From Salpingoeca rosetta (taxonomy: Eukaryota > Protista > Choanoflagellata), in NCBI GenBank assembly GCA_033442325.1, contig JAWQFM010000035.1, forward strand, positions 1 through 44,739: DNA of 44,739 bases, given 5' to 3'. The notes beneath the pieces are model-generated. The model worked only from the letters and a program-made list of their open reading frames with translations. It did no database searches and was not told the origin of the DNA. Position 1 is the stretch's first letter; each line of letters starts with the position of its first letter. Position numbers and translations under genes: made by a program. This document shows, piece by piece, positions 1 to 42,400 of this stretch.

Positions 1-174
1 TGACACAGATAAACATATGCGCTCGCTGACATCTCAATACATCAACATAATCACTCCATGTATACTATTGTGCCCTGAAAGACGGCCTAGAGGTGAAGAG
101 AAAGCGGCAAACCTTTCATTCCGTGAGGGCGCGCCGATCAATTCACGTGCACTCCCCTTAATTAGTACTGCCGT

Positions 175-259
<85 letters not shown>

Positions 260-407
260 TTGTCGACTACATGTGAGAAGGTGTTGGGAAGGTGTGCTGG
301 GTTTGATGTGGGCAAGCATGTAACACAAGCATGTAACACACACATACACACATACACACACACACACATGCACATGAACCCGTCATGCGCTGGAGAGGTG
401 TGCGCAC

Positions 408-2494
408 CTCCACGACCACGTCCTTCTTCAGACACTTGACGGCGACGGTTTTGCCGGACGATTTGTCCTTCGCCAGGAGCACCTTTCCGAACGAGCCGCG
501 ACCGAGGACCTGCGCCGTGATGGTGATGGTGATGGTGATGGTGTGTGTGTGTGAGCGTGTGTGTGTGTGAGTGCGAGTAAATGTGTGTGTGTGTGAATGT
601 GGGTGCGTGCGTGTGGGTGCGTGTGCATGTGCGTGCCAATGTACGTGTGGGTGGGTGGTCAAGTGCTGTCATGCGAAAAAAGTGCACGTGATGGCTGCTC
701 ACCTTCTGGAAGGAGTAGGCGTCCAGGCTCGCAGCCACGCTCGCACTCAGCTCCTGTCGTCATACACGCAATCACACGTGTTCACCCGCAACAGAGACAT
801 GTCATGAGGGCACAGTGACAACGCAAGAGGCACAAAAAGTACAAACAGTTCCTGGTGTGCCATGTGCATGCGGATGCGTTGCCTGCACGCACGTCGCTCT
901 TTGAGTCCTCCAGATCGGCCGACTGAAACTTCTTCGTGATGTCCTCAACCTGTGCACACATCCACGCAGCGAAACCGGACATGAGACGGGGCGATGCCAT
1001 GCGATGTAATAGGGTGGTGCAGAAGGAGAAATGCAGCAGCACTCAAGGCTGAAACACGCAGACACACACACACACAGACACAGACACGAACACACAAAGA
1101 CACGTATATCACATGTTCCTGGATCTCCACCAACGTCCACGCCATCCCCTCCTCTCCGCGCAAGTGCGAGTGCGACCTTGAGGGCAGACGCTGCCTCGGG
1201 GACCTTCATGTGGAACTTTGCACCCTGCTTCTTGTCAAGCCACTTGAACCACCCCGTGTACTTGTCCGTGCTGGCGACGGTGACCGTGACGGGTGATGGA
1301 ATGGAGGTGATGGTGATGGGTGAGACGATCACACATGCGATCAACAGCATAAATACACACACACACGCACACAAACACACACACAAACACACAAACTCAA
1401 ACAAACACACACACACAAACACACATACACACACAGAGCCTAGGCAAGCAACCCCAAGTCAACCACAACAGCGCAAAGCATCAGCAGCTCCAATCCCAAC
1501 ACGGGCATCAACGCACCCTGCGGCCTCCTCAATGTCGGAGAGGCGGAAGGTCATGCAGCCCATAAAGTCGTTGCTGCCGATGCGGTCCTTGTCCCAGACC
1601 TCCAGGAACAGCGACTTCTGCTCGAGGTCGGCGCCCGGCGGCACAATGCTGAACACACGGCGGCGGTGGTGGTGAGTGGCGAGTGAGTGGCGAGTGAGTG
1701 AGTGATGGTGGTGATGAGTGAGTGAATGAGTGGTGATGAAACCGTAGTCACGAGCAGGCAGGCAGAATTCAGCAAGACGTAGCGTTCGGACAAAACACAC
1801 ACACTGCATGCCGCCACCAACCCTTGCAGCTTACAACTCAAAGGCGTGGTTGAAGTTTGGATTGAGGTTGGTCGAGTGCACGCGGGTCTTCTGCTTCTCC
1901 TTCTTGTCAGGCAGAATCTTGGCCTGCACACGATGGTGGTGGTGGTGGTGGTGGTTGTGGAGGCATGTTGTGTCATGTTGTGTCGTGTGAGGTTGACAGT
2001 GAGCACGGGGTAATAGTTGAATGAATGAGCTTGGTCCAGGTCAAGTACATCCATGTGTTCTCTTCCACGCCACCTTCGCCTTCACTCATCACCATCGCAC
2101 ACGACATCCAACCTAACGCTCACATCACACCAGGCGCCGCACCTTGCAGTAGGGGTCGCTGGAGCCGCTCGGGTCCATGGGGATGAGGTTGTGTGCCTGC
2201 CCGACGTGGCATGTCACGAGCCGGCTCCCGTCAGAGTTCTGCACCGCACCGATTGGTTGTGGTGGAGGAATATTCGGGGGGGGGGAGGGGGGGAGGGTTT
2301 GAGGTGTTGGTGGCGGGAGAAATGGGCGTGGTGAATGCATGTGTCCTCACATGTGCACGACACAAGCAAGCAAAGCAACCAAAACAAGCAAAGCAAGCAA
2401 AGCAAGCAAAGCAAGCAAAGCAAGCAAAGCAAGCAAAGCAAGCAAAGCAAGCAAAGCAAGCAAAGCAAGCAAAGCAAGCAAAGCAAGCCAGGCA

Positions 2495-2544
<50 letters not shown>

Positions 2545-3541
2545 ACGATTACCTTTGCAATGCCGATCTTGAGTTGGACGCGGCCGCGCTTCTCACGGTG
2601 ATCGAATCCGCACATGTGCGCAACTTTGCTCGTGCACGACTTGTGCACATTCAGCTTGCAGCCTTGCGTGTCGAAAAGGGGAGGGAAGGGGTGATGCACG
2701 AGGCACAAGCAAAAATGTCAGATTGACAAACAGCAATGCGCGACCAAGCAGTGTGATCAACGTCTTTCATATTCAACACCACATATGAGCGTACCTGTTG
2801 CCCTCTACACGCCACCACCTTCTCTCCACTATTCACAACTGCCCGGCACTCCTCCTTCCATCGCAGCGCCTTGCGCAGCAGTCCCTGTCTCACGTGAGTC
2901 TGGAATAACTCACTCTTGCACTGCTTGCCCTGGTGGTAGAGGCCGTACAGCAGAGAGCCGCAGTGGTCGCAGAAGGTGGGCGACATGTACGTGTGCGACG
3001 ACCACTCGTGCTCCTTGGTCGGTGCCTGATTCAACGAAAAAAAAAAAAGTTCACATCGTGCAATGGAGTGGAGGGAGGGGGAAGGTGTCAGTGGGCAAGT
3101 GTGCAGTGGAGTGGAGGGAGGGAAGGAAGGAAGGTTGAAAGATGCAAGTCGGTGCAACGAGGACGGGGAGCAGTCGCAACACGCATCGACGCAAGTACAA
3201 GACATACACAAACAGACACACACAGACACACACAGACACACACACACACACGTACACACACACACACACGTACACAGACAGTGGCACTCACATCCGTTGG
3301 CTTCTCCAGGTCTGTGCCTGGGCAGTGAAAGTGCACAAACTCGTGGCAGCGCTTGTGCACCACAAAGCCGCAATCTATCGTGTGGTGTGGTGTGGCGTGG
3401 TGTGGCGTGCAGAGTTAGCATGCCCGGAACAGGAGCCACAGCAGGGATCACAAATGCATGCACGTCAGCGCATTTGAAGTGCATTCAAAAACAACATTTA
3501 CACACCAAACATACACCACATGTGCGCGCAACATACACCGC

Positions 3542-3602
<61 letters not shown>

Positions 3603-3812
3603 CGCAACAAACAAAACACAACAAAACAAACAAACAAACGAACCGATGCACTGGTAGCCTTGCTTGCCAAAACCCCACATAAACTCGGAGCAGTGGCAGC
3701 AGAAGGTGGGCTGCTTGAAGAACTTGGCCTGGAACTTGTGATCCATCACCTCATGGATCTTCTTCTTGCGCATGGCGCCGCCACGGCGAAAGTCAAACTT
3801 CTTTTCAGACAT
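408..3812 (-). CDS. PKC: Conventional protein kinase C (pseudosubstrate-C1A-C1B-C2-kinase), 5' part; gene continues off the left edge of the window
   Basis: Eleven GT-AG exons join in frame: 3644-3812, 3292-3374, 2914-3025, 2553-2662, 2143-2238, 1835-1923, 1517-1648, 1177-1270, 893-949, 703-753, 408-509. Motifs: pseudosubstrate [10 protein letters not shown]; C1[18 protein letters not shown]...HKRC; C1[19 protein letters not shown]...HKSC; Ca-type C2 ([25 protein letters not shown]); kinase glycine loop [10 protein letters not shown] and VAVK. Confidence 0.95.
2385..2487. repeat. 9-bp tandem repeat (CAAGCAAAG)n in a PKC intron
   Basis: About 11 near-perfect copies visible, followed by a (CA)n tract. 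Confidence 0.9.
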
Positions 3813-4306
3813 GATGGTGGTGGTGGTCTCTTGCTGATCGTGACCTTAAGACAGAGAAACAAAGCAGCACGGCAAGGGTGAGCTGCATTGAGTGCGTATT
3901 CATGAGTTTTGACATGACATGATGTGAGTGAGGCGCAGCCCACGATGCAGCAATCTCCGACACAGGAGGAAGGAGAGTAAAACAACGCGCAGTGACACAC
4001 AACCACACACAGCGGGTTCATCAGCAGTCCATGCATCAACACCAACTTGCTTGCTTGGGGGATGAGGAGGGTCCTTCTTCAAGCCAAAGCGATATGGGGG
4101 AGGGGTGGGTGTTGTTGTGTTTGCGCAAAAGTGATCGCCTCTTGGTTGTTGTGTGTTGTTGTTGTTGTGCGACAACGACAAAGGTAAGAATATCATTTAT
4201 GATACCAACAAATAATCGCCTGATAGGACTGGGTCGAAAAATGCGTGTTGCTGAGTCAGCGAAAACAATGACGACGAAGGAGCGGAAAGACAACACCACT
4301 CCAAAT

Positions 4307-4386
<80 letters not shown>

Positions 4387-4397
4387 CGCATTGTGTT

Positions 4398-4997
4398 CTA
4401 CTCTGGCTTAATGCTCCAGTAGCCCTTTGAGCCAACACGGGAGAAGGTGCACGTGCTGTGCAGCAGGCGAACAAAGACGGCCTGTCTGCTCCCGGCAACG
4501 CGCTTGTTGAAGTGGTCCAGCAACGCCTGTGTCGACGCACGCCCACCTGATTCATGTGTGTGCATGTGTGTGTATGAGAGAGTGTGTGGTTGTAGTGTGT
4601 GTGTGTGGTTGTAGAGAATGAGAGAGGCAGAGAGAGAGAGAGTGTGTGTGTGTATGTGTGTGTGTGTGTGTGTGTGTGTTCGCGCACTTGACGTGTGCGA
4701 GTGCGTGAGTGTCGTGGCTCAATGCCAAACGTGCAGATCGTACAGCAACAAAGCAAGCCTTCGTCACGTCACGACAACGAGGACGTGCACATCATGGCAG
4801 CAGCACCTTTCTCTTTGATAAACTGTCGAATCTCCTTTAGCAGCGGAACAGCAAACTCGGACGCGTGCGCAGCACTCACATCTGCGTGTGTACAGTATAT
4901 ATGTGGGCCAGTGTAGAAGCAAGTGCGTGAGTGAAGCATGTTTTCAAGATGTGCATGTGCATTTGTCCTCACTCGCAGTCCCAACACACACACACAT

Positions 4998-5056
<59 letters not shown>

Positions 5057-5455
5057 CATGCACCCCCCCCCCCAACACACACACTAGCATCCCACCTTGC
5101 TTCCGCTTCTTGATCTGCGCCATAATGCCGCGTGACCCCGTGGTGTCTCCACGGCCACGGCCATCACCATCACCGCTACTGCTGGGACTTGTTCCATCAC
5201 CACCACCAGCACCACCAGCACCAAATGTCTTTCTTCCTCCGCCAAACCGCTTTGCAGCAGACACCTGCAGTTGCATTGTAGGAGGAACGCAGGGAGAAAG
5301 AGAGAGTGTGTGTTTTGTGTGAATGTGTGTGTGTGTGTGTGTGAACAGCAATAACAACAGCAACAGCAATCACAACAGCAACATCGTCGTGTCATAACAC
5401 TATCACCTGTCCAAATCGCTGGCCCGACTTGCCTGTCCACGTGACCGTCCCAATA
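4398..5455 (-). CDS. ERCC6: C-terminal exons of an ERCC6/CSB/Rad26-like transcription-coupled repair factor; ATPase-encoding 5' part not in the window
   Basis: Exons 5407-5455, 5096-5264, 4807-4881, 4398-4546 splice in frame: IGTVTWTGKSGQRFGQ / VSAAKRFGG...IMAQIKKRKQ / ...LLKEIRQFIKEK / GGRASTQALLDHFNKRVAGSRQAVFVRLLHSTCTFSRVGSKGYWSIKPE*. This resembles the CSB C-terminus (PTWTG motif and terminal winged helix GQASTREILQEF...VFRELLRNLCTF...GIWKLKPEY). Confidence 0.85.
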
Positions 5456-5486
5456 CTGCAGCAGATGCAAAGAACCAAGGGAGGGT

Positions 5487-5586
5487 NNNNNNNNNNNNNN
5501 NNNNNNNNNNNNNNNNNNNNNNNNNNNNNNNNNNNNNNNNNNNNNNNNNNNNNNNNNNNNNNNNNNNNNNNNNNNNNNNNNNNNNN
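5487..5586. other. Assembly gap (100 N, probably a placeholder of unknown true size)
   Basis: Run of N separating ERCC6 intron sequence from 28S rDNA. Confidence 0.99.
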
Positions 5587-5699
5587 TGGTCCCTTCGATG
5601 ACACCCTTCCATTGCCACAATGCCCCCACAATGCCCCCACAAGTAGTGACCAAATTATTCCAACCCATTGTAACCCACCAAACCCGCACCCACAATACC

Positions 5700-6904
5700 G
5701 GCCCCTTGCATAGAAAACTTCCGCCGTTGATCCCGCGCTTGGCTTGAATTTCTTCACGTTGACATTCTGAGCACTGGGCAGAAATCACATTGCGTCTACA
5801 CCGTCGCAACAGCCTATCCTCGCAATGCTTTGTTTTAAGTAAACAGTCGGATTCCCCTTGTCCGTACCAGTTCAAGATCGGTTGCTAAATTTTAGTGTGC
5901 GCAGAGGGTAAAGGTGCAAGAGCGGCATGCAAGCACACCCCCTTTCACCGCCACCCCCCACACACACAATCAACCTCTTGAGCCAATCCTTATCGCGAGC
6001 TTACGGATCTATTTTGCCGACTTCCCTTACCTACATTCGTCTATCAAACTAGAGGCTCTTCACCTTGGAGACCTGCTGCGGTTATCAGTACGGCCAACCA
6101 CGCCCACATGCAGCGGAGAAAATAGATTAGCACAAGTGCTCCTCTTCTTCCCCCCACACTGCTACCATTCACACCCTCGGATTTTCATGGACCGCCGGGA
6201 ACGCGCCGGACACCACAACAAAAAAAGGTCAGTGGTGCTTTGCCGAGCCTCTCACCCCATCTCCAGCCAAACTGATTCCAGGGTCAGAGAATGCGAGGAG
6301 GAAGGGTGAAGAGCGCACAGAATACACTCTTTCCCCCTACTCCCCCCACAATGCAGCTCGTTAAAAAGAAAAGAAAACTCTTTCCAGGGCCCCCGGCAGC
6401 GTCTCCGAGTTTGTACGCGTTGCCGCTGCTCTATCAAACATTCTTTGTGGCGTGCGTTGGTCCAGGGAATCTTAACCTGGTCCCTTTCGATGGACTGGGT
6501 AATCAACACGTGTGCAAGCATGGCGATAATATCACCACCACCCACACACACGCAACAACTCCCCACTTGACACAGGACTGCCCCATCTCTTAGGACCGAC
6601 TCACCCGTGGCCAACTGCTGTTCCCACGGAACCTTGCTCCACTTCAGTCTTCAAAGCTCTCATTTGAATCGTTGCTACTGTCACCAAGATCTGCACTGGA
6701 GGCCCCTCCACCCAGGCTCACGCCACAGGCTTCCACGGTAAAAGATTGCTCTCACGCAAACACCTCCACGCCCACCTACTTGTGTGTGGCTACATGTAGT
6801 TTTGAGACGCAACAAGCACGAATGCTCGCTTCGCTCGCTTTCTTCCACACACAGCGGAGTATAGGTACGACGCTTGAGCGCCATCCATTTTCAGGGCTAG
6901 TTGA

Positions 6905-6938
<34 letters not shown>

Positions 6939-7180
6939 ATTCCGACTTCCATGGCCACCGTCCTGCTGTCTATATCAACCAACACCTTTTGTGGGTTCTC
7001 ATGAGCGTCGATTCCGGCACCCTAACTCCGCGTTCGGTTCATCCCGCATCGCCAGTTCTGCTTACCAAAAATGGCCCACTTGAGACTCGGTTATTCAGCA
7101 TTGCCCGCTTCATAAACAAAGAAAGCGCGCCGCCTTACCCATTTAAAGTTTGAGAATAGGTTGAGGGAAGTGGCTCCCCC

Positions 7181-7211
<31 letters not shown>

Positions 7212-8161
7212 AACTAACCACATTGCAATAAAAGTCTCAGCTATCCTGAGGGAAACTTCGGTGGGAACCAGCTACTAGATGGTTCGATGAGTCTTTCGCC
7301 CCTATACCCAAGTTCGACGACAGATTTGCACGTCATGATCGCTACGAGCCTCCACCAGAGTTTCCTCTGGCTTCGCCCTACTCAGGCATAGTTCACCATC
7401 TATCGGGTCCTAAACATCTGCGCNNNNNNNNNNNNNNNNNNNNNNNNNNNNNNNNNNNNNNNNNNNNNNNNNNNNNNNNNNNNNNNNNNNNNNNNNNNNN
7501 NNNNNNNNNNNNNNNNNNNNNNNNNNNNNNNNNNNNNNNNNNNNNNNNNNNNNNNNNNNNNNNNNNNNNNNNNNNNNNNNNNNNNNNNNNNNNNNNNNNN
7601 NNNNNNNNNNNNNNNNNNNNNNNNNNNNNNNNNNNNNNNNNNNNNNNNNNNNNNNNNNNNNNNNNNNNNNNNNNNNNNNNNNNNNNNNNNNNNNNNNNNN
7701 NNNNNNNNNNNNNNNNNNNNNNNNNNNNNNNNNNNNNNNNNNNNNNNNNNNNNNNNNNNNNNNNNNNNNNNNNNNNNNNNNNNNNNNNNNNNNNNNNNNN
7801 NNNNNNNNNNNNNNNNNNNNNNNNNNNNNNNNNNNNNNNNNNNNNNNNNNNNNNNNNNNNNNNNNNNNNNNNNNNNNNNNNNNNNNNNNNNNNNNNNNNN
7901 NNNNNNNNNNNNNNNNNNNNNNNNNNNNNNNNNNNNNNNNNNNNNNNNNNNNNNNNNNNNNNNNNNNNNNNNNNNNNNNNNNNNNNNNNNNNNNNNNNNN
8001 NNNNNNNNNNNNNNNNNNNNNNNNNNNNNNNNNNNNNNNNNNNNNNNNGCACCACACCAAAAGCCCTGATCACAAGGCGCGCCCAGTCTCTGCTAGCTGC
8101 AAGCGATTCTCTGTCAACGGTTTCACGTACTGTTTAACTCTCTTTTCAAAGTGCTTTTCAT

Positions 8162-8195
<34 letters not shown>

Positions 8196-8513
8196 GTGCC
8201 AGTATTTAGCCTTGGATGCAGTTTACCACCCGGCTTTGGGCTGCATTCCCAAACAACCCGACTCAAGAGAATAAACGGACCACACACCGCACATCAGCGC
8301 AAATAATGTAGCACCAACGGGACTCTCACCCTCTCCGGTGTCCTCTTCCAAGGAAACTCGGTGCTGCGCCAAACAACAATGCACAACAAAAGCTGTGCAC
8401 CATCACAAAGACATGCGACGGCCCGCATCCCATAAAGACTACAACTCGCCACAAGCAAGAAGCTTGTGGAGATTCCAATGCTTGAGCTCTTCCCGCTTCA
8501 CTCGCCGTTACTG

Positions 8514-8547
<34 letters not shown>

Positions 8548-8595
8548 GTGATATGCTTAAGTTCAGGGGGTACCCTTGCCTGACCTGAGGTCAAC
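5700..8595 (-). rRNA. 28S rRNA: 28S (LSU) rRNA, 5' part from domain I into domain IV; 3' part absent beyond the gap; internal N gap 7424-8048
   Basis: Reverse complements of conserved LSU blocks: TTGACCTCAG...CTGAACTTAAGCATATC at the 5' end, GTTCGCTATCGGTCTC, CAGCTATCCTGAGGGAAACTTCGG, CGCCAGTTCTGCTTACC, CACCTTGGAGACCTGCTGCGG, GAGCACTGGGCAGAAATCACATTG. Similarity decays left of about 5710, near the gap. Confidence 0.97.
7424..8048. other. Assembly gap inside 28S, covering about the D2-D3 expansion region
   Basis: 625 N between two co-linear LSU segments. Confidence 0.95.
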
Positions 8596-9477: not shown

Positions 9478-9663
9478 GGCGACACTCAGGCAGACATGCC
9501 CGCACGCACAGACACGCACACAATGGCGCATGCCCACACACACAGGCGCAATGTGCGTTCGAAGATTCAATGATTCACGGAATTCTGCAATTCACACTAC
9601 ATTTCGCGTCTTGCCACGTTCTTCATCGATGCACGAGCCAAGAGATCCACCGTTGAAAGTTGT
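9478..9663 (-). rRNA. 5.8S rRNA: 5.8S rRNA (~185 nt, with an expanded 3' hairpin)
   Basis: Minus strand reads ACAACTTTCAACGGTGGATCTCTTGGCTCGTGCATCGATGAAGAACG...GTGAATTGCAGAATTCCGTGAATCATTGAATCTTCGAACGCACATTGCGC...GCATGTCTGCCTGAGTGTC. Confidence 0.97.
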
Positions 9664-10327: not shown

Positions 10328-10328
10328 G

Positions 10329-10385
<57 letters not shown>

Positions 10386-10478
10386 AATGATCAAGTTTGA
10401 CCAGGTTCTCAGCAAAGAAACACATGGGCAGCTGTTGCCAGCGCCCACGCGCCAATCCCGAGGCCTCACTAAACCATT

Positions 10479-10524
<46 letters not shown>

Positions 10525-11055
10525 ATCAACGCAATCTGTTGAATTGCGCTTACTAGGAATTCCTCGTTCAAGATGAATAATTGCAAGCATCTATCCCCAG
10601 CACGACGGGTTTTCACAAGAGTCCCCACGCCTTCCAGCGCAGGAATAGATGTCTGTCATAGAAAAGCACAAGACTTTCCCCACCACAAACACCCAAAGCA
10701 TACTCGCTGCCCCCGTCAGTGTAGCGCGCGTGCAGCCCAGAACATCTAAGGGCATCACAGACCTGTTATCGCCTCAAACTTCCTTCGGCTTACGCTCAAT
10801 AGCAACGCCGAGTGTCCCTCTGAGTGGTGTATCAAAAGACACGCTTGCGCGTAATCTCCAACGCCTGCTGACGCAGGCGCACACCAATCAGCAAGTCAAG
10901 GTCTCGCCGTTTACCGTAATCAAACAGAGATTTCACAACAAAAGCTGGACGGCCATGCACCACCTCCCTTGGAATCAAGAAAGAGCTGTCAATCTGTCAA
11001 TCCTTCCCATGTCTGGACCTGGTGAGTTTCCCCGTGTTGAGTCAAATTAAGCCGC

Positions 11056-11102
<47 letters not shown>

Positions 11103-12430
11103 ATCTTGCGATCATACTCCCCCCGGAACCCAAACGCTTTGGTTTCCCTAAAGGTCCCGATGGCGCCACCATGCTTTGAAACATTTGTGCTGCCCACCGA
11201 GCCCTGGCCGGCATCGTTTATGGTTAAGACTACGACGGTATCTAATCGTCTTCGATCCCCTAACTTTCGTTCTTGATCAATGAAAGCGTCCTTGGCAAAT
11301 GCTTTCGCAGTCGGCGGTCTTTCGTAAATCCAAGAATTTCACCTCTGACAACGAAATACCAGTGCCCCCAACCGTCCCTATTAATCATTACTTCAGACCC
11401 GATGTGGTGAGGGAGGAACAAGAAAACCTTGCGGTTTCTCACTCCACACCCCCGCACCACACGCCAACAGTACAGGCCCAAAAGTCCTCTTCCGTTGTTC
11501 CATGCTAATCTATTCAAGCAAATCAAATGACTGCCTGCTTTGAACACTCTAATTTTTTCAAAGTAAAGCCCCCAACAGCGCCCCACCACTACGTGACTTG
11601 ACACACACCCAATCAAGGGCACGCGCCAAAGGCGCCACCAGGGAATATTAAAACTGCAGAGTGCAAACAGTGGCAGGCAGAAGAAGGCGCGCGTAAAACA
11701 CACCCTCTCCACCCACACACCGTGAACCCCGCATGAAATCCAACTACGAGCTTTTTAACTGCAACAACTTTAGTATACGCTTTTGGAGCTGGAATTACCG
11801 CGGCTGCTGGCACCAGACTTGCCCTCCAATTGTTCCTTGATAAGGTCTTTACATTGTTCTCATTCCAATTGCACAGTGCATAAAAAACACCGTGCATTGG
11901 TATTTATTGTCACTACCTCCCTGTGTCAGGATTGGGTAATTTGCGCGCCTGCTGCCTTCCTTGGAAGTGGTAGCCGTCTCTCAGGCTCCCTCTCCGGAAT
12001 CGAACCAAATGTTCCCCGTCACCCGTTGTCACCATGGTAAGCCAATACCTTACCATCGAAAGTTGATAGGGCAGAAATTCGAATGAGACACCATCACACA
12101 CAAAAGTGTAACGGTCAGCAAAGTTATTCTGATTCACCAGTCATGTTCCTGCTGGCTTTATACCTAACAAATGCAGCCCTCGAGAAGAAAAAATGTGCAT
12201 ACACACACCTCTCTCTCGGGCCTTGTCGCACGTATTAGCTCTAGAATTACCACGGCTATCCGTCTAGCACAACACCGCTCCGAAAAACGAGTTGCAAACT
12301 ATCAAATAAACTATAACTGATTTAATGAGCCATTCGCAGTTTCACAGTATCAAGAATACTATTCATACTTAGACATGCATGGCTTAATCTTTGAGACAAG
12401 CATATGACTACTGGCAGGATCGACCAGTTA
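10328..12430 (-). rRNA. 18S rRNA: 18S (SSU) rRNA, full length, ~2100 nt, divergent
   Basis: Minus strand begins TAACTGGTCGATCCTGCCAGTAGTCATATGCTTGTCTCAAAGATTAAGCC, contains GTGCCAGCAGCCGCGGTAA, AAACTTAAAGGAATTGACGG and TTGTACACACCGCCCGTCG, and ends GTAGGTGAACCTGCGGAAGGATCATT. Confidence 0.99.
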
Positions 12431-15260
12431 TCTCTCCATAGAAGGGGCAGTGGCTGTTCGTGGTGTGTATGAGTATGCGTGTATGAAATGTACGTGAATG
12501 CGTGTGTAGATGCGTGTGGATGCGTGTAGGTTGTAAGCCCATACACATTACACACACACAATACACAACGCATCACAGTCCACACAACACACACCACACA
12601 CTACGGCTGCCGCCCAGCTATGGCTGTCGAGGATTCAGAAGAGACGAGAAACACAAGCAAAGGGAAAAGAGAGAGAAACACACAACAATGCAATGAATGT
12701 CATGCATCTTCCCTTCTTCCCCCTCAGTGTTCACTCACTCACTCCTCCTGCACCCCAACAAACAAAGCTTCCACAAGCAACACGCACATCGCTGCACGTG
12801 CCACTCGGGTCGTTCTGTTTTTCTTTTTGGTTTTGTTCTTGTGGCTATGCACACAACAACAACCCCAGACACACACACACAAAAAGGTGTGGGGATGAAG
12901 CAGTGCCATTCAATGCAAATACATACAATGTGTGTGCTGTTCTCAGCGAGTGCCACTGACAACAACCTGCTCTGTCAACAAAACACACACCACCATTGTT
13001 TCGCATGTGCATGCATGTGCATGTGTGTGTGTGCAAACAACGCAACGTTGCTCACACAACACACAGCACACACCACAGCACACACAAATATAATGGCAGC
13101 ACGTGCCCATCAGCAGCATGCAGTGCGCATGGCTCTCTTTCCAAACAACACACAACACTGTTTCGCATCAAATGTACTTCATCCACGCATGTGTGCGTGC
13201 CCAACATCATCATCGTGCTCACAGCACAGTTTGCCTCCACTCATGATCGAGTGTTGCTCAAGGCACCCTCTCAAGAAGAACAATCCACACCGCTCTCACG
13301 GCGAGATTGCCTCCTGCATGCGCAAGCTTGGTGTCATCAAGGACAGTCGCCACCTGCCAGTTTTACGGCAGACAGCGCCCACCCTCTATCAGAGATCACA
13401 GCAGATAAACACACTTCCATGTGCCTTGCCGTCACTCCGCCAGCGGCTTGCAACTTGCTTCAACATCATAGACTTTTGGCTCAACACCAGCAATCCATGC
13501 AAAGCTTTGCTTGCTCTCGCTCGCAATACTTCATCGACCCGCATGTCACAGCGGGCTGCGCCTTGCCTCCAAAGGCAACCACAGCCACACCCACAACACA
13601 CAGCTGACAACGTTTTCTTTTTCACTGTGCCGCATCCACGTGTGCAGCAAAGCAACTGCCAGCCATTCCCCCACACACAAACACATATTGGCTCATCGCT
13701 CTTCTCCCAACGCACAGCTACACACACAAGGAGAATGCAAACCCGTTCATGCGCACACACGTCATCTACGCGCCAGGCACACCGCTGTGCCCAGGTCTCA
13801 ATGCACCATGCGTGCAGGCTTGCTTCCTGCGTCTCGCTGCGTCACATATCACACAGCAATGTGAATGTGAGGAGAGAAGAACAATCAAGAGCCAACAAAT
13901 GCGTATTCGTGTGAGAAGAATGACCAGCGCTTCACGCTGTCACACTCAGAGGAAGCTGATCAATCAGCTCGCCCTCTTTCCGCAAACACAGTCGTTGCTC
14001 GCCACAAACGCATGCCGTGTGTTGCTTTGCTTCTGTGTGGTAGATGATGCGATTGCACATGCGAGTGATCACAAGAACACACACAGAGATACGAGCAATC
14101 GCTTGCTCGCCTCCCCGCATGTGCCTCATCACACCCACACACAATGCTCACGCATCACCCACACACAAACAATCACACACTGACACACGCGCCCGTGCTG
14201 TTCTCATTGCATGTGCTGTGCATGCGTGTGTGCTCGTGCAAGCTTTGCTCACAACACACTCAAGTGTCGCTTCGCTTTGCCTGCACTCACACACACACTA
14301 CACACACACACAAATGAAGAGAGAGGTCGCTCAGAACACAGCAGAGCAAAGACCCAAGAAGAAAGAGAAGTTGTAGCTGCAAGGGCGCAGACGCGGCTTT
14401 TCGTGCCCGCAAGCAATCCTGCTCAGCGACATTCGCCTTGCTCTCATGCTTGCGCCTCTACTCAGCGGCTCTTTGCCCTTGCCTTCTCTTTTTCTTTTTT
14501 GTCTTGCTCATTTGCATCCTTCCCCTCATGTATGCCAATCCATCGAGCGGCAGCTGTTTGAATCGCTGCTTCGCCCTCGTGCACTTTGCCTTCAGGCACC
14601 GCAATCTAGATTCAGCCAATCTGCTAGATCTAGATTTGTGACTGGATCTAGCGAGTGCGCACAGCTTCACTGCATCAAGATTCTTCACATTGCTCACACC
14701 CAAAAATCCCCTGGTCCGTGACCAACCAATGCTTGCATGCATGCAATTTGCTTCGCTTGCGTACGCTGCATGCTGCACAGCTGCACTGGTGCATCGCGAC
14801 GCAGTGTTCAGACACTACTCATCACAGTGTTCAGCTTTTTTTCATCACATGATCGCACTTTTTCTGCACCACTTTTTGACTCCACCGCGCCAGTCTCCCT
14901 ACTCCGGTGATCAAATGAGCAAGCGAGCAAACGTCACTGCACCATGCTGTGAGCTGCTGCAACAGAGTCAAGACCACGTGGCTGGCTTGCAGGCACACGT
15001 GCACGCGAGCACACTGCACTGTGCACACTTCTACTTGCCTGCAGGCACGCTGCGCTGAAGCAAGAAGGAGCAAAGCAGAGGAACTGTGGAGTAGAGCAGC
15101 GAGGATGGATTCGTTTCCATGTGATTGCACAAGAGACAAGCAAGCATGCAGAGAACGACGAGGAACAGCGCAAGGGACACGTGTGCACGTGTGTATGCAT
15201 GCGTTTGTGTGTAGATGTTGCCTGCAGGCACGGGAACGTGTTTCTAATTAAAGTGGATTG
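12431..15260 (-). other. Putative 5' external transcribed spacer and Pol I promoter region
   Basis: Directly upstream of 18S with no credible exons. The first ~2 kb shares the GU-rich strand bias of the ITSs. The transcription start cannot be located from sequence alone. Confidence 0.55.
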
Positions 15261-15269
15261 AATGAGTAG

Positions 15270-15990
15270 TAATCCTCTGCTCACTGCAGACACACTTGCA
15301 TGCGATTGTGCAGTGCTGCTGCGTTGCTTGCAAGCATTGGTAGCTTCTCCTACTTGCATTGGATTCACTCCACTACACCCCCCTACTCACTGCAAACACA
15401 CTTGCATGCGATTGTGCAGTACTGCTATGTTTGTTCTAACTACTCACTGCTGTGTTACTCGCAAGCACTCACAACGTCTCCTGCTTGCATTGTATTCACT
15501 CCACTACGATCCGTTTACTCACTGTTGTGTTACTTGCAGGCACTCACAACTTCTCCTACTTGCATTGGATCCACTCCACAACAATCCTCTGCTCACTGCA
15601 CACACACTTGCACGCGATTGCACAGTGCTGCTGCGTTGCTCGCAAGCATTGGTAGTTTCTCCTACATGCATTGGATTCACTCCACAACGATCCTCTGCTC
15701 ACTGCAGACACACTTGCATGTGATTGTGCAGTGCTGTTGTGTTACTCGCAAGCATTGGTAGCTTCTCCTACTTGCATTGGATTCACTCCACTACATCCGT
15801 CTACTTACTCGCAGGCACTCACAACTTCTTCTACTTGCATTGGATTCACTCCACGACATCCGTCTACTCCCTGCTGTGTTACTCGCAAGCACTCACAACT
15901 TCTCCTGCTTGCATTGAATCCACTCCACCACATCCGTCTGCAAGCGCTCACAACTTCTTCTACTTGCATTAGATTCACTCCACACATCCA
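15270..15990. repeat. Degenerate tandem subrepeat array, IGS/Pol I enhancer-like
   Basis: Eight copies of the core CTACTTGCATTGGATTCACTCCAC at about 15350, 15481, 15556, 15662, 15768, 15831, 15905 and 15960, with 55-131 bp periods and related linkers. Confidence 0.85.
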
Positions 15991-17486
15991 TTGCTCGCTA
16001 CAGACACTCCTGTGTAAGCTTGCTTGCTCCGTGCGTGTTGCTTGCAAGCACCCACAACTTTCCTTGCTTCCACCCTGTTCACTTCACAACACGCCTCCAC
16101 TCACTCGTCACTGTGTCACAGCATCACCCACCATGCCTGCACGTACCTGCAATCGGCCCTTTATCAATCCTCACCATCACTCACACATTGCTCTGTCGCC
16201 CCCTCACCACTTCACTCCACTCCACTTCGCTCAGCAGCAACGCCTCCCGTCTTGGATTCACGCTCCAACATCACCTGCGCTTCCTCTCTCGCCTCCAGCA
16301 GCGATATGATCAGGTGCGTAAGAAGCTCACTGCAATCGTCTTCTCCTCTTCCCACTTCACCTTCTCTCTACATGCATGTGTGCTACTGCTTGCAATGTTT
16401 GTGCTTCTGCTTCCTTTGCTCCACCGCCACAAACACAACACACACACATCCATGCATGCGCCGCTTTGTTCATTTGTCTCACCCTTCACTCACTTGCTTC
16501 CTTCTCTCTTCCCTTTGCCTTTCCACATTCCATGTGTTGCATTGTTGCTCTGCACTTGTTGCCACATGTATGCTTCATTCACCCTTGTCTCTTCCTCTCT
16601 TCCATCCACTCACCGCCACACAGCACCCCTCCACACAACATCACACATCCTTCACTTCACACGTCACAACACAGCACCACACAACACAACCCACTGTGTG
16701 CATTCGTGCTTCCCTTCGTCACTTTCTGTCACCAACGTGTCACCACAAGCCTTGTTTGTCTATTTCACCTGCGTTCCACCACACCCTTCCTGTCTTGTTT
16801 CAATTCTTGCCACTGCTGCTGTTGTTTCCATGTGCTTGCATGCCTTCCCTTGTCTCTGTTCACTACTTTGACCGCCACTCCTCCCCTCCCCTCTCCTTAC
16901 CCTCTTCTGCCTCGTTCATGTTTCATGCTGCATGTGTTACAACACATGGTAAACCCACCAAGCCCACACTGCCACCTTCTTCACCATCAGCCCTGTTCAC
17001 ATCCACCACCACCAGTCGCTGCAATCATCACTCACTCGCTTCATCCTTTCCCCCACACCCACGTTCACTGCTGCTGCTGCTGTCCTCACCTGCGTGCAAC
17101 ACCCACTCCACAGCCACACGCCCAGCTCAACACCAACCCAAGTCACATCACATCACACACACACATTGTGTTGACTGCACTGCAACCATCCACAACCATC
17201 CTCCAGCACCATCACACGATACACACAGCTGCACATGCGTGTTGCATTGTATGTTTCCACTACACTTCAGCAACACGACAGCAAGCAAATACACACAGAC
17301 ACACAGACACACGTGGCAAGAACAGGCGAGAAAGCATCCCCATATCAACTGCAAGCAACACACACACACAACAAGCGACAGCTCCATGCTACGCCACACC
17401 GCTTCACTCCCCTATCAGCCGCCATCATACCTTCAACCAACAACAACAGCAGCAACAGCAGCAGTGTGCATGCTGTGGCAAGAGAG

Positions 17487-25695: not shown

Positions 25696-25799
25696 NNNNN
25701 NNNNNNNNNNNNNNNNNNNNNNNNNNNNNNNNNNNNNNNNNNNNNNNNNNNNNNNNNNNNNNNNNNNNNNNNNNNNNNNNNNNNNNNNNNNNNNNTATA

Positions 25800-37900: not shown

Positions 37901-38809
37901 CGTGCCATGCCCCTTGCTGCCCCCACCCAACAACAGGGCGACACGCCACTGCACGTTGCCTGCAGGCACAACCAGCCAGCCATTGTGAAGCTGCTCGTCG
38001 AGAAGGGCGCAGACACTTCCGTCAAGAATAAGAAGGTGTGCTTCGCGTCGTGTTGCTGTTTCTGAAGACGTGACACAACTGCTTCTTTGCTTTGCGCTGT
38101 GTTCTCCCCCTCTCCCTGCTTCCCTCCTTCCTCAACTCATGCGTTTTACCTTTCCAACACACGCAGGGAGAGAGGCCCTATGATGTGGCACAGGCCGGCC
38201 ACGCTGCCATCACCAGCATCCAAGGGCTGAAGCCAGGCGGCAAGCCTTCGGAGCAACCACAGCAGCAACAACCAAAACAAGAGCCACCTGCGCCCACTCC
38301 TGCCGCCGGACCGAAGCAAGAAGAACAAGCAGCGCAAGACGTGAGTGATCAGAAGGGTGCTTGCCAGCAACGCACAAGCAAATGCATCACGTCACCCATG
38401 CCATTCCTTCATCACGCTCTCCGTGGTCTCGTATCAAGCATAATCATGATGTCTCACACAACCGTCACCACCGCCACCAGCAGCAGCAGCCCGAGCAGGC
38501 GCGCAGGGAGCGTCTCCAGCAGCGCATGCGGGGGGTCATAGCACGCTTCAACGCGACCATGGCGGGCAGGGCCAAACTCATCTTCATTGGTCAGGGGCGC
38601 GCCGGCAAGACTTCCACGTTCCACTCACTCATGGGTCACATGTTCAACAAGCACGAGCACTCCACGCATGGCGCCGCCTCAACCGACCTCGCCGTCATTG
38701 TCGAATCAATGGACGTTCACGACTGGCAGGTGTGTGAGTGAAGCTGATGCGAGCATGTGATGTGTGCGACGATGGGTGTGAAGCGAGGTGGTGGTTGACA
38801 CGATCATCC

Positions 38810-38865
<56 letters not shown>

Positions 38866-39417
38866 CCTTTGCAGGAGCTGGATGCGGAAATCTCTGAGTT
38901 GATGCGCAGTCTCTGCGGCACAGCGCTGGCGCAGGAATCTGGCGTGGACTTGCAGATGAAGCAGGCGATGATGAAGGCGAAGGCCGACTTGGAGAGCCGC
39001 GTTGCCCAACACCAACAGCAACAGCGGCAACAAGAAGCCGAGAAGGCAGAGAAGGCGACGGGTTCAAAGTCGAAGAAGGAGCAGTTACAGAATTCAAAGG
39101 AGACGCGGTCACGGCCATCCTCCCGCACGTCGACATCGACGGTCCCAAAGCCCAGCAAGGCATCTCATGACTCAGCATCTGCGCCCACGAAGCAGGCCAC
39201 CCTAAACCCTTCCAGCCAAAGTGATGCTGCTGCGCGTGACAACAGCAGCAGCACCACGCCCGGCATGTCTGCTGAGGAAATGGAGAAAGCGATCAAGGAA
39301 TTCAACGTGGACGCCGTCATGGGCGAGGGCAAAGCGCGGGTCACGTTCAAGATCTTTGACCTGGGTGGCCAGTCCACCTTCTACATCTTCCACCCTTTCT
39401 TCCTCACAAAGTGGGTC

Positions 39418-39469
<52 letters not shown>

Positions 39470-42400
39470 TGTGTGTATGTGTGTGTGTGTGTGTGTGTGT
39501 GCCTGTGTGTGTGCGTTTGTCTGCTTGCAGTCCCTCCACCACCTCTCATTCATTCACCTCTCCCTTCATCACCCCACCCACCCAACAGGTACGCGGTGTA
39601 CCTGCTGGTGTTCTCGATGGAGGACCTGCTGCACCAAGACGAGAGCAAGCGGACAGAGGCGTGGGAATTTATGGAGCACTGGCTCTCCTCCCTCCACCTC
39701 CACGCCAAGGGCGCACCCGTCCTCATCGTCGGCACCTTCGCTGATGTGGTCAGCAAGCGGAAGCAACATGAGCAGATCTCACGTGACATTTACAGTCGCC
39801 TGCGCCACAATCCCGCCTTCCCTGGCGTCATCCACAACGACAAGCACGGCCTGTGGTTCTGGCCCGTTGACAACACCAAGTCCATCCACGACTCCATGAT
39901 CCAGGACCTGCGCCAAACCATCTCCTCCACAGCACTGGCGCAGGAATACGTGAGTCAGGAGGTCGCTGTGCCATACCTCCACCTCTACGACAAGCTCAAC
40001 GCCATTGCCCGCGACGAGGAGCGGCCGCTGCTCGCGTTTGACAAGGTGGTGGCGATTGCACGCACATGTGGGCTGCGTACACGTGAGGAGACGAGGGCGT
40101 GCCTCCAGTTCCTGCACCTGTACTCGATGGCGTTGTACTACGACCACGTGCCTGGCATGGAGGATTTCGTGATCCTGAGTCCACAGTGGGCTGTGGACAC
40201 GATGACGCGCGTTATCCGTAACTTTGACCTGCATCACGATGTGCGTGATGGCGAGGCGAGGGCCGTTGGCGCGCAGCTGTGGGACGACCTCGTTGACCGC
40301 GGCATCCTGCACCGTCACCTGCTCGACGTGTTGTGGAACGGCGTGGACAACAACTTGGTGATGCCGTTCCTGCACCTGATGATGCAATACGGGCTGTGCA
40401 TTGAGTATTCCCCACCCAAGCTGGTCGACAGCCGCACGGCACTTGCCCGCACCAACTCCGGCCACGGTGACAACGATGCGAGCGAGAGTGATGAACAACA
40501 ACAACAACACAAGCACCAGCAGTACCTGGTTCCAGCCATTCTGCCGATGACCATCTGCCACAGCAGCAGCACGATGGCATCCGTGTCGCTGAGCACGACA
40601 GCAGCGCAGCGAATCAACCCATATCTTGGGTACGAGGAGAAGACCGCATTTGTTGCCTTCAGCCTGAAGCAATTCAAGCGAAGTGCGAGCGTGCAAGTTG
40701 AAAATGCACAGCACGCATCGTTCCTGCCCGAGGGGCTGTTTACAATCGTGTTGGCTCATGTGCTGGCGCATGCACAGCACGGCGCATCGCAGGAACCCAA
40801 GCTGAGCCGCACCCATGCCATCTGCTTCATGGAGTCGACTAAGCTTGAACTGCAGCTTGTGCCGGCTGTTGGCGGCATCAAGATGAAGATCACGAGTGCG
40901 CAGCCACGCGCCATGCTGCACATGCTGCACACCATGATCAGCGAGGCCGCCAGAGAGCATTACCCAAGCCTGATGAGCAGCCTCCTGCTGCCATTTGACG
41001 ACAAGACGCTGCTGTTCTTTGAGGATGTGCTGCACCACCACAAGAGCAAGCAGGACATGTGGGTAGACGAACAGCTGCTGTCACCCGATGACCTGATCGC
41101 CAAGTATGGCCGTCTCTTGCCCGTTCTCGGCCTGCAGGACAAGTACGACGTCTTCATCAGCTACAGGTGAGTTGTGTGTGTGTATGAGTGTGTGTGTATG
41201 TGTATGGCGCGTGTATGTGTATGTGTGTGTGCCAGTATCTGTCTGTCACTTCCACCCACTAGCCACAACTACTGCATGTAGCTTCCCCTCATCTCATCAC
41301 TACCGACTCCAACCCCCCCCCCCTCCCGCAACCACACCCTCAGGCAACGCGCCAGCAGTGGGCTGGTGATGGCGCTGCATCCGCGCTTGGAGCAGCGCAA
41401 CCTGGTCGCGTTTCTGGACGCCAACAACCTGGAGACGGGCCTCAACTTCAAGCTGTCGTTCATGACGGCGATTGGGCTGAGCCTGGTGGCCTGCCCCATC
41501 GTCTCTGCTGCCACCATCATGCAGATGAGGCAGCTGCAGCACAGCGACTACTGCGACAACGTGCTGCTGGAGTGGATGACGATGCTGGCGCTGCGCGAGT
41601 ACCAACGGGCGCACGAGGAAGATGAGGAGCAGCAACACGCCAAGATCCGCCTTCGCCGCGTCGTGCCCGTGATTGTTGGCAGCGCGTGGCACAATGTGAA
41701 CGACAGCAGCATGAGCAAGGCTGAGGTGAGCGAGTACGACTCGTTTGACCGACTGAAGCGGCTGGCAATGAAGTTGCCGGATGCTGTGAGCAAAGAGACG
41801 GCAGCCGCGCTCGATCAGTACTTTTCACAGGTGCTGCGCCTGCCACCACCCCAGCAACACAAAACCGTGCGTGAGATTGTGCTGTCGCTCTTTGACATTG
41901 ACGCCGTGGTTGCATTGGACGCCGCTGTGGACCGCACGTCGCAGCTGCGCGACATCGCGGAGAAGGTGCGCCAGGTCGTCGCTTCTGCCAGGAGTGCAGA
42001 ACAAGCAACGCAGGGGCCAGCAACAACTGCACGTCGTTCCACGCAAGTGCAAGTATGTTTGAGTGTGAGTGTGGGTTTGTGGGTTTGAGTGTGAGTGTGA
42101 GTGTGAGTGTGGGTGCATGCATGCAGGCGAACTCTCTTCCTCTTCATCTTCCACTAGACGCTCACGCTGTGATTCACCCCCCTCACTCACATATCTTACA
42201 GTCCTCGTTGTCGCTCTCGTCCACCTCCGCGACAACTCCTGTTACACCACCACCTGCCACCCCATCTTCCTCCTCCCCCTCCTCATCGCCATTCGAGCCA
42301 GAGCTCATTCAATGGCTCAACCGCCACTCGCTGCTGTCGCACGTCGAGTCGGCGCTGATAGAGCACGGCATTGACTCGTTGGAAGTGCTGGTGGCTCTCG

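Follow-up and report, generated by a model that had tools for sequence, protein, structure and literature searches.

Likely compensatory turnover of a conserved head-domain junction in the 18S rRNA of the choanoflagellate Salpingoeca rosetta

How does a junction of the small-subunit rRNA that is normally conserved come to be rewritten over several helices, and to match a bacterial 16S rRNA in one of them? The question is raised by a stretch of Salpingoeca rosetta DNA of 44,739 nucleotides (assembly GCA_033442325.1, contig JAWQFM010000035.1, positions 1 to 44,739), hereafter called the window. Among the closest relatives of animals, S. rosetta is the principal laboratory model, and its ribosome is commonly taken to be canonical. 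Its 18S rRNA sequence has long been public. The literature covered, which was partial, contained no description of the h34-h37 rewrite and none of an S. rosetta ribosome structure.

The window carries a complete 18S rRNA gene of 2103 nucleotides on the minus strand (10328-12430). The gene exceeded the gathering score of the covariance model RF01960 over its full length (1590.6 bits for a cut-off of 50, model positions 1-1831 of 1831) and is therefore a eukaryotic SSU rRNA. The 5.8S rRNA of the same unit is found at 9480-9661 (minus strand; RF00002, 144.6 bits). It is followed by the 5′ two-thirds of an LSU rRNA (5717-8570 or 5864-8570, minus strand, model positions 24-2120), in which similarity to complete rDNA units stops at 5717, near model position 2120 of 3401. 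Three runs of N are present in the window, two of 100 (5487-5586 and 25696-25795) and one of 625 within the LSU (7424-8048). The oddly low GC content of this LSU (37%) was discarded as an artefact of the 625-N run, which also explains the lower LSU score. The unit may be a real truncated unit or may result from a scaffold or assembly join; the conclusion on the motif is unaffected. The same LSU truncation pattern was observed at C24 (about 13948-16845). Downstream of the truncated LSU, exons resembling those of protein kinases are found together with CA/GT microsatellites in window positions 1-5700. On the other side, about 3 kb upstream of the 18S gene, repeats of about 106 nucleotides with sub-periods of 63-75 nucleotides form an array (15271-15989) that may belong to the intergenic spacer of the rDNA unit.

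The rewritten stretch covers 66 nucleotides (10895-10960, minus strand) and sits in the 3′ major (head) domain of the 18S rRNA, at about positions 1283-1345 of RF01960 in the Infernal alignment. Its transcript, when the sequence was re-read, was letter for letter the one given in a preliminary description of the window. The 2-nucleotide deletion proposed there at the h34/h35 junction was also recovered by Infernal: two U of a consensus UUA are absent, leaving a single A. The deletion site lies at 10946-10947 (minus strand), its exact placement within GUCCAG being ambiguous. On the 5′ side of this site, the 5′ strand of h34, GGUGGUGCAUGGCCGUCC (10947-10964), carries a C in place of a conserved U at its end, which reads ...GGCCGUCC, and its last two pairs are non-standard. 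On the 3′ side, still on the minus strand, follow the 5′ strand of h35, GCUUUU (10940-10945), the h36 hairpin GUU-GUGA-AAU with three pairs (10930-10939), the h37 hairpin CUGU-UUGAUU-ACGG with four pairs (10914-10927), in which U10924 and A10917 form the loop-closing pair, and the 3′ strand of h35, AACGGC (10906-10911). All these elements were placed with Infernal, the h35 strands, h36 and h37 also by scoring of the canonical structure, and h36 in addition by comparison with E. coli. The 3′ strand of h34 was aligned further downstream in the transcript (10749-10768, minus strand). Two consensus changes just before or at its start (about 10768-10770), GCAAgA becoming GCGAUA, face the remodelled end of the 5′ strand.

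Compared to the canonical eukaryotic 18S rRNA of the yeast or human type, as represented by RF01960, the S. rosetta gene has the same helices, the same GUGA tetraloop in h36, the same loop length of 6 nucleotides in h37, the same position in the head domain and the same eukaryote-type flanks, GGUGGUGCAUGGCCGU ... CGAGAC. In another choanoflagellate, Monosiga brevicollis, this region is presumably canonical. It differs by the 2-nucleotide deletion in the junction, by the replacement of six pairs, by changes at about eight highly conserved positions, by the non-standard terminal pairs of h34 and by a much weaker predicted stability. The pairing pattern was read directly on the consensus structure. 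Within 10901-10953, 13 paired positions are substituted with respect to the Rfam consensus (Infernal, RF01960). Six pairs are altered on both sides, five of them still being standard, and one pair is altered on one side only and is still standard. Overall, 12 of the 13 pairs of the h35/h36/h37 three-way junction are standard; the sole exception is a U.C mismatch in h35, next to five standard pairs in that helix. The last two pairs of h34 adjoining the deletion are C.A and C.U (5′ 10947-10948, 3′ 10767-10768; Infernal), and these are uncompensated. The proposal of coordinated, structure-preserving changes thus holds for h35 to h37 and fails for the end of h34.

Could such a pattern arise by chance? 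When 13 substitutions were placed at random on the 26 paired positions, a fraction of 2e-4 of the 200,000 simulated trials left at least 12 pairs standard. In addition, the block departs from the consensus at about 8 of its about 40 highly conserved positions, as compared to about 21 of about 860 such positions in the rest of the gene, an approximately 8-fold enrichment (Fisher p = 1.6e-5). These are hand counts made on the Infernal alignments at upper-case consensus positions, taking the block as model positions 1292-1340 and covering the model apart from positions of about 590-812. Taken together, the paired pattern (p 2e-4) and the clustering confirm the observation, which lies far outside what chance would give.

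The predicted stability of the junction was then considered. When the 40-nucleotide junction was folded in isolation, the minimum-free-energy structure was not the canonical one and its z-score was -0.55, a result that is uninformative for a junction supported by proteins. For this reason the canonical structure was scored directly. It gave -0.8 kcal/mol in S. rosetta, as compared to -9.4 kcal/mol for the same 40 nucleotides of E. coli. When the two strands of h34 were folded together, the main stem of this helix was confirmed; the pairing drawn for its terminal part looks spurious.

The resemblance of h36 to a bacterial sequence was examined on E. coli K-12 rrsH. As stated in the preliminary description, the ten nucleotides GUUGUGAAAU are found at positions 1074-1083 of this gene, which correspond to h36 in standard numbering. 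The term "bacterial-type" used there is nevertheless too broad, E. coli K-12 being the sole comparison. In many bacteria the h36 stem is different. The two genes also have in common the CAGCU just upstream of h36, and 16 of 19 letters around h36 are identical. Such a resemblance is what one would look for if the block were a patch from a bacterial or organellar 16S gene, acquired by gene conversion or horizontal transfer. A transferred tract would, however, be expected to have bacterial-type flanks. In an anchored comparison with the E. coli 16S rRNA, only 34 of 57 positions are identical and the identity ends at the end of h36. The 3′ half of the block departs from the E. coli sequence as well as from the eukaryote consensus, and its closing CGAGAC is of the eukaryote type. 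Moreover, the junction is 2 nucleotides shorter than that of E. coli and than the eukaryote consensus, and RF01960 is the best Rfam family for the gene. Because the tetraloop and its closing G-U pair are shared anyway, the h36 match reduces to two stem pairs that both became U-A, and the chance that two paired changes match a given target is roughly at the few-percent level. We therefore consider a transferred patch very improbable. The E. coli identity of h36 is best explained by convergence. This origin, already envisaged in the preliminary description, is the most economical reading, with two stem pairs changed under a pairing constraint.

To place the window gene among the other 18S genes of the organism, the assembly was scanned (55.4 Mb; it is scaffolded with N gaps, so that some rDNA copies may not be independent loci). 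The 18S loci are many and dispersed over scaffolds. A 52-nucleotide block of the motif was found in 14 copies with zero mismatches, on 11 scaffolds, and no copy with 1-3 mismatches was found in the assembly. The assembly also contained no match to a canonical eukaryote-type 40-mer within 3 mismatches. Complete units with a full LSU (C30 and C3) bear the same block. The 18S copies differ from the window copy by 1.3-2.7%, and the differences are concentrated in variable regions. Just 3′ of the motif, the 18S copies of the genome have one or the other of two clearly distinct versions of the V7 variable region (10831-10886, minus strand), the minority version being carried by C25, C9 and C4. A divergence of 1.3-2.7% among 18S copies is high for one genome. 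Two further 18S copies are aberrant. The first, at C9:20062-23333, is rearranged and 3.27 kb long, with an insertion that starts inside the motif and includes a partial duplicate of 18S positions 1476-1847. The second, at C4:7675-9770, lacks positions 1293-1426 and carries single-base indels, with single-base deletions in the motif.

The special status that the preliminary description implied for the window gene was thus not borne out, since the motif is present in the organism's standard 18S rRNA: 14 of 14 assembled block copies are identical. In view of these copies, and with no canonical 40-mer within 3 mismatches in the assembly, a paralogue-specific rRNA was rejected. A broader version of this idea is that the block marks a second, divergent rRNA type of a specialised ribosome that exists beside a canonical 18S, like the A and S types of Plasmodium. 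As in Plasmodium, the rDNA of S. rosetta is heterogeneous and dispersed, with units on many scaffolds, 1.3-2.7% apart, and two V7 versions. In contrast with the Plasmodium types, the differences between S. rosetta copies are confined to variable regions; the core block is the same in all 14 copies and the canonical block is absent from the assembly. The sequencing runs of the organism argue in the same direction, as described below, and a specialised rRNA type appears highly improbable.

Run data were used in the form of Logan contigs, and the stretch 10600-11000 was compared with four runs. In public runs of S. rosetta from six studies dated 2010 to 2025, 84-89% of the sampled words of the 18S gene were present. 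One run of the same organism, whose RNA label is a guess (X1), covered all bins of 10600-11000 with a word depth of 0.2-1.5 million, and of 0.6-1.0 million over the block in its contigs. Among the differences listed for the contigs of this run, no alternative letter was found in 10895-10960. Its conserved flanks showed no surplus depth such as a second 18S type would give. The run thus bears no sign of a canonical block. At the variable-region site 10658, the window copy has A and about 90% of the X1 contig depth has G; therefore, the window copy is probably not the majority expressed sequence at this site.

These data also bear on the possibility that the block is a sequencing or assembly artefact, or that it reflects pseudogene decay of a truncated unit. 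It is true that the LSU of the window unit is truncated, that its scaffold contains N gaps and that the C9 and C4 copies are rearranged or carry small indels. On the other hand, the same block is found in the complete units C30 and C3, in runs of several studies dated from 2010 to 2025 and in environmental RNA. The preliminary description had already argued against pseudogene decay, and it was right in this: the changes are compensated, and the motif is the same as in complete units and in RNA-derived contigs. Artefact or decay is the least probable of the explanations weighed here.

The environmental RNA came from wetlands. Exact S. rosetta-type contigs are present in two wetland metatranscriptomes (X15 and X17). 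In both, a related lineage is represented by further contigs that keep the motif; one of them has 251 nucleotides and 33 differences, mostly in V7. The motif is thus also found in at least one related environmental lineage. Because it is common to S. rosetta and to the wetland relative, the rewrite predates their split. In the relative, two changes, 10917 T>C and 10924 A>G, occur on the same contigs, so that on the transcript the loop-closing U-A pair of h37 becomes C-G. This pair therefore reads G-C in the consensus, U-A in S. rosetta and C-G in the wetland relative. The double change from U-A to C-G is direct covariation in support of h37. In the community data, depth is 10^5-10^6 in the conserved flanks as compared to 150-1000 across the motif, which indicates that the motif is rare among the eukaryotes of those wetlands. 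In a wider set of wetland metatranscriptomes from five studies (X15-X20), 38-44% of the sampled words of the 18S gene were present, showing that S. rosetta-type and closely related choanoflagellates are active there. A metagenome contig was considered as an independent relative and rejected: it was the sole eukaryote-type 18S with the 2-nucleotide deletion that was found, but it is 99.3% identical to the C36 copy.

Ribosomal proteins were also searched in the genome, since the preliminary description had suggested that divergent paralogues of the neighbouring proteins might accompany the rewrite. In 30S structures, S2, S5 and S3 reportedly contact h34-h37. Helix h34 itself has a role in decoding and in head movement. 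For uS5 (RPS2), two loci were found, C3:1433705-1433899 and C14:798362-798556; their first exons are identical and their flanks partly similar, which suggests a recent duplication. The protein is canonical, its first exon being 74-78% identical to animal uS5 and closest to animal and fungal proteins. A single locus was found for uS3. Divergent paralogues of uS5, as judged by the first exon of its two identical canonical copies, or of uS3, with its one locus, were thus not found. Exon-wise searches of the genome with PF00318, TIGR01012 and PF16122 did not locate cytosolic uS2 (RPSA), the sole match being a mitochondrial-type S2 (C8:1900863-1902157). This probably reflects a sensitivity limit of the exon-wise search or an assembly gap rather than absence of the gene.

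These results help to weigh an adaptive remodelling, in which the junction and the loosened end of h34 would alter head dynamics or a binding surface and would have evolved in concert with a partner, for which uS2, uS5, uS3, a biogenesis factor or a snoRNA guide for a nearby h34 modification are candidates. Several features fit this possibility: the changes at conserved positions concentrate strongly in the block, h34 is uncompensated at its terminal pairs, the junction has become shorter, copies that vary elsewhere all have the same block, and, in 30S structures, S2, S5 and S3 reportedly touch this region. However, uS5 is canonical, uS3 is single copy and no altered partner came to light. The uniformity of the block among copies would be expected just as much of any functional rRNA core. 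We consider adaptive remodelling unlikely. Its more specific form seems quite unlikely; there, the h34/h35-h37 hinge of the 40S head would be functionally remodelled, with a shortened and weakened junction, a loosened base of h34 and co-evolved protein or snoRNA partners. If true, this animal-sister model would differ measurably in head dynamics, in the binding of drugs or factors, or in rRNA modification at h34.

We favor, with a probability of about 80%, a lineage-specific compensatory turnover of the head-domain junction in an 18S rRNA that is both the ordinary one and the sole type in S. rosetta. Along the S. rosetta lineage, this turnover would have involved the h35/h36/h37 three-way junction and, next to it, the end of h34. 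Of the six pairs exchanged, five would have become a different standard pair; the junction would have lost two nucleotides, and h34 would be looser at its last two pairs. Helices and GUGA tetraloop alike would have been retained, leaving a junction that is richer in A-U and G-U pairs and presumably weaker than usual. Inside the ribosome, the canonical fold would be held by proteins and tertiary contacts. The structure may thus have been maintained by selection, and the E. coli-like h36 would be a coincidence of constrained change. We infer that the turnover corresponds to nearly neutral compensatory evolution and not to an adaptive change of ribosome function. A functional consequence is nonetheless possible, as the block is the densest cluster of conserved-position changes in the gene and the h34 end is uncompensated.

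Compensatory change in rRNA helices is textbook knowledge and forms the basis of comparative rRNA structure models. The S. rosetta block follows the same rule, with double substitutions that keep pairs standard and a further step from U-A to C-G in the relative. It is unusual only in the concentration of these changes in a very conserved core junction of a fairly conservative 18S rRNA. It makes a clean, small case of compensatory evolution with a covarying relative. Neither a ribosome of a new kind nor specialised rRNA paralogues are indicated by it. What is gained is that a normally conserved core junction of the S. rosetta 18S rRNA is lineage-specific. The block affects rRNA alignment and phylogenetic placement, through misalignment or added branch length. 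It is also relevant to the design of probes and primers and to the modelling of the S. rosetta ribosome on yeast or human structures.

Some further features of the DNA were recorded. Elsewhere in the window, the ROCO/LRR protein that the preliminary description had placed at 34.9-42.5 kb is consistent with Roc and COR-A domain matches in a large gene at 38788-41170 (plus strand; PF08477 weak, PF16095 4.6e-16). The identity of the genome as that of S. rosetta is supported by two features. It contains at least 150 cadherin-domain matches, inside giant open frames of up to 7,500 amino acids. An rpl36a repair-oligo arm has been published for Salpingoeca rosetta (Booth & King 2020, PMC7314544, supplementary file), and a 30-nucleotide stretch of this arm has one exact match in the genome, at C4:1348472.
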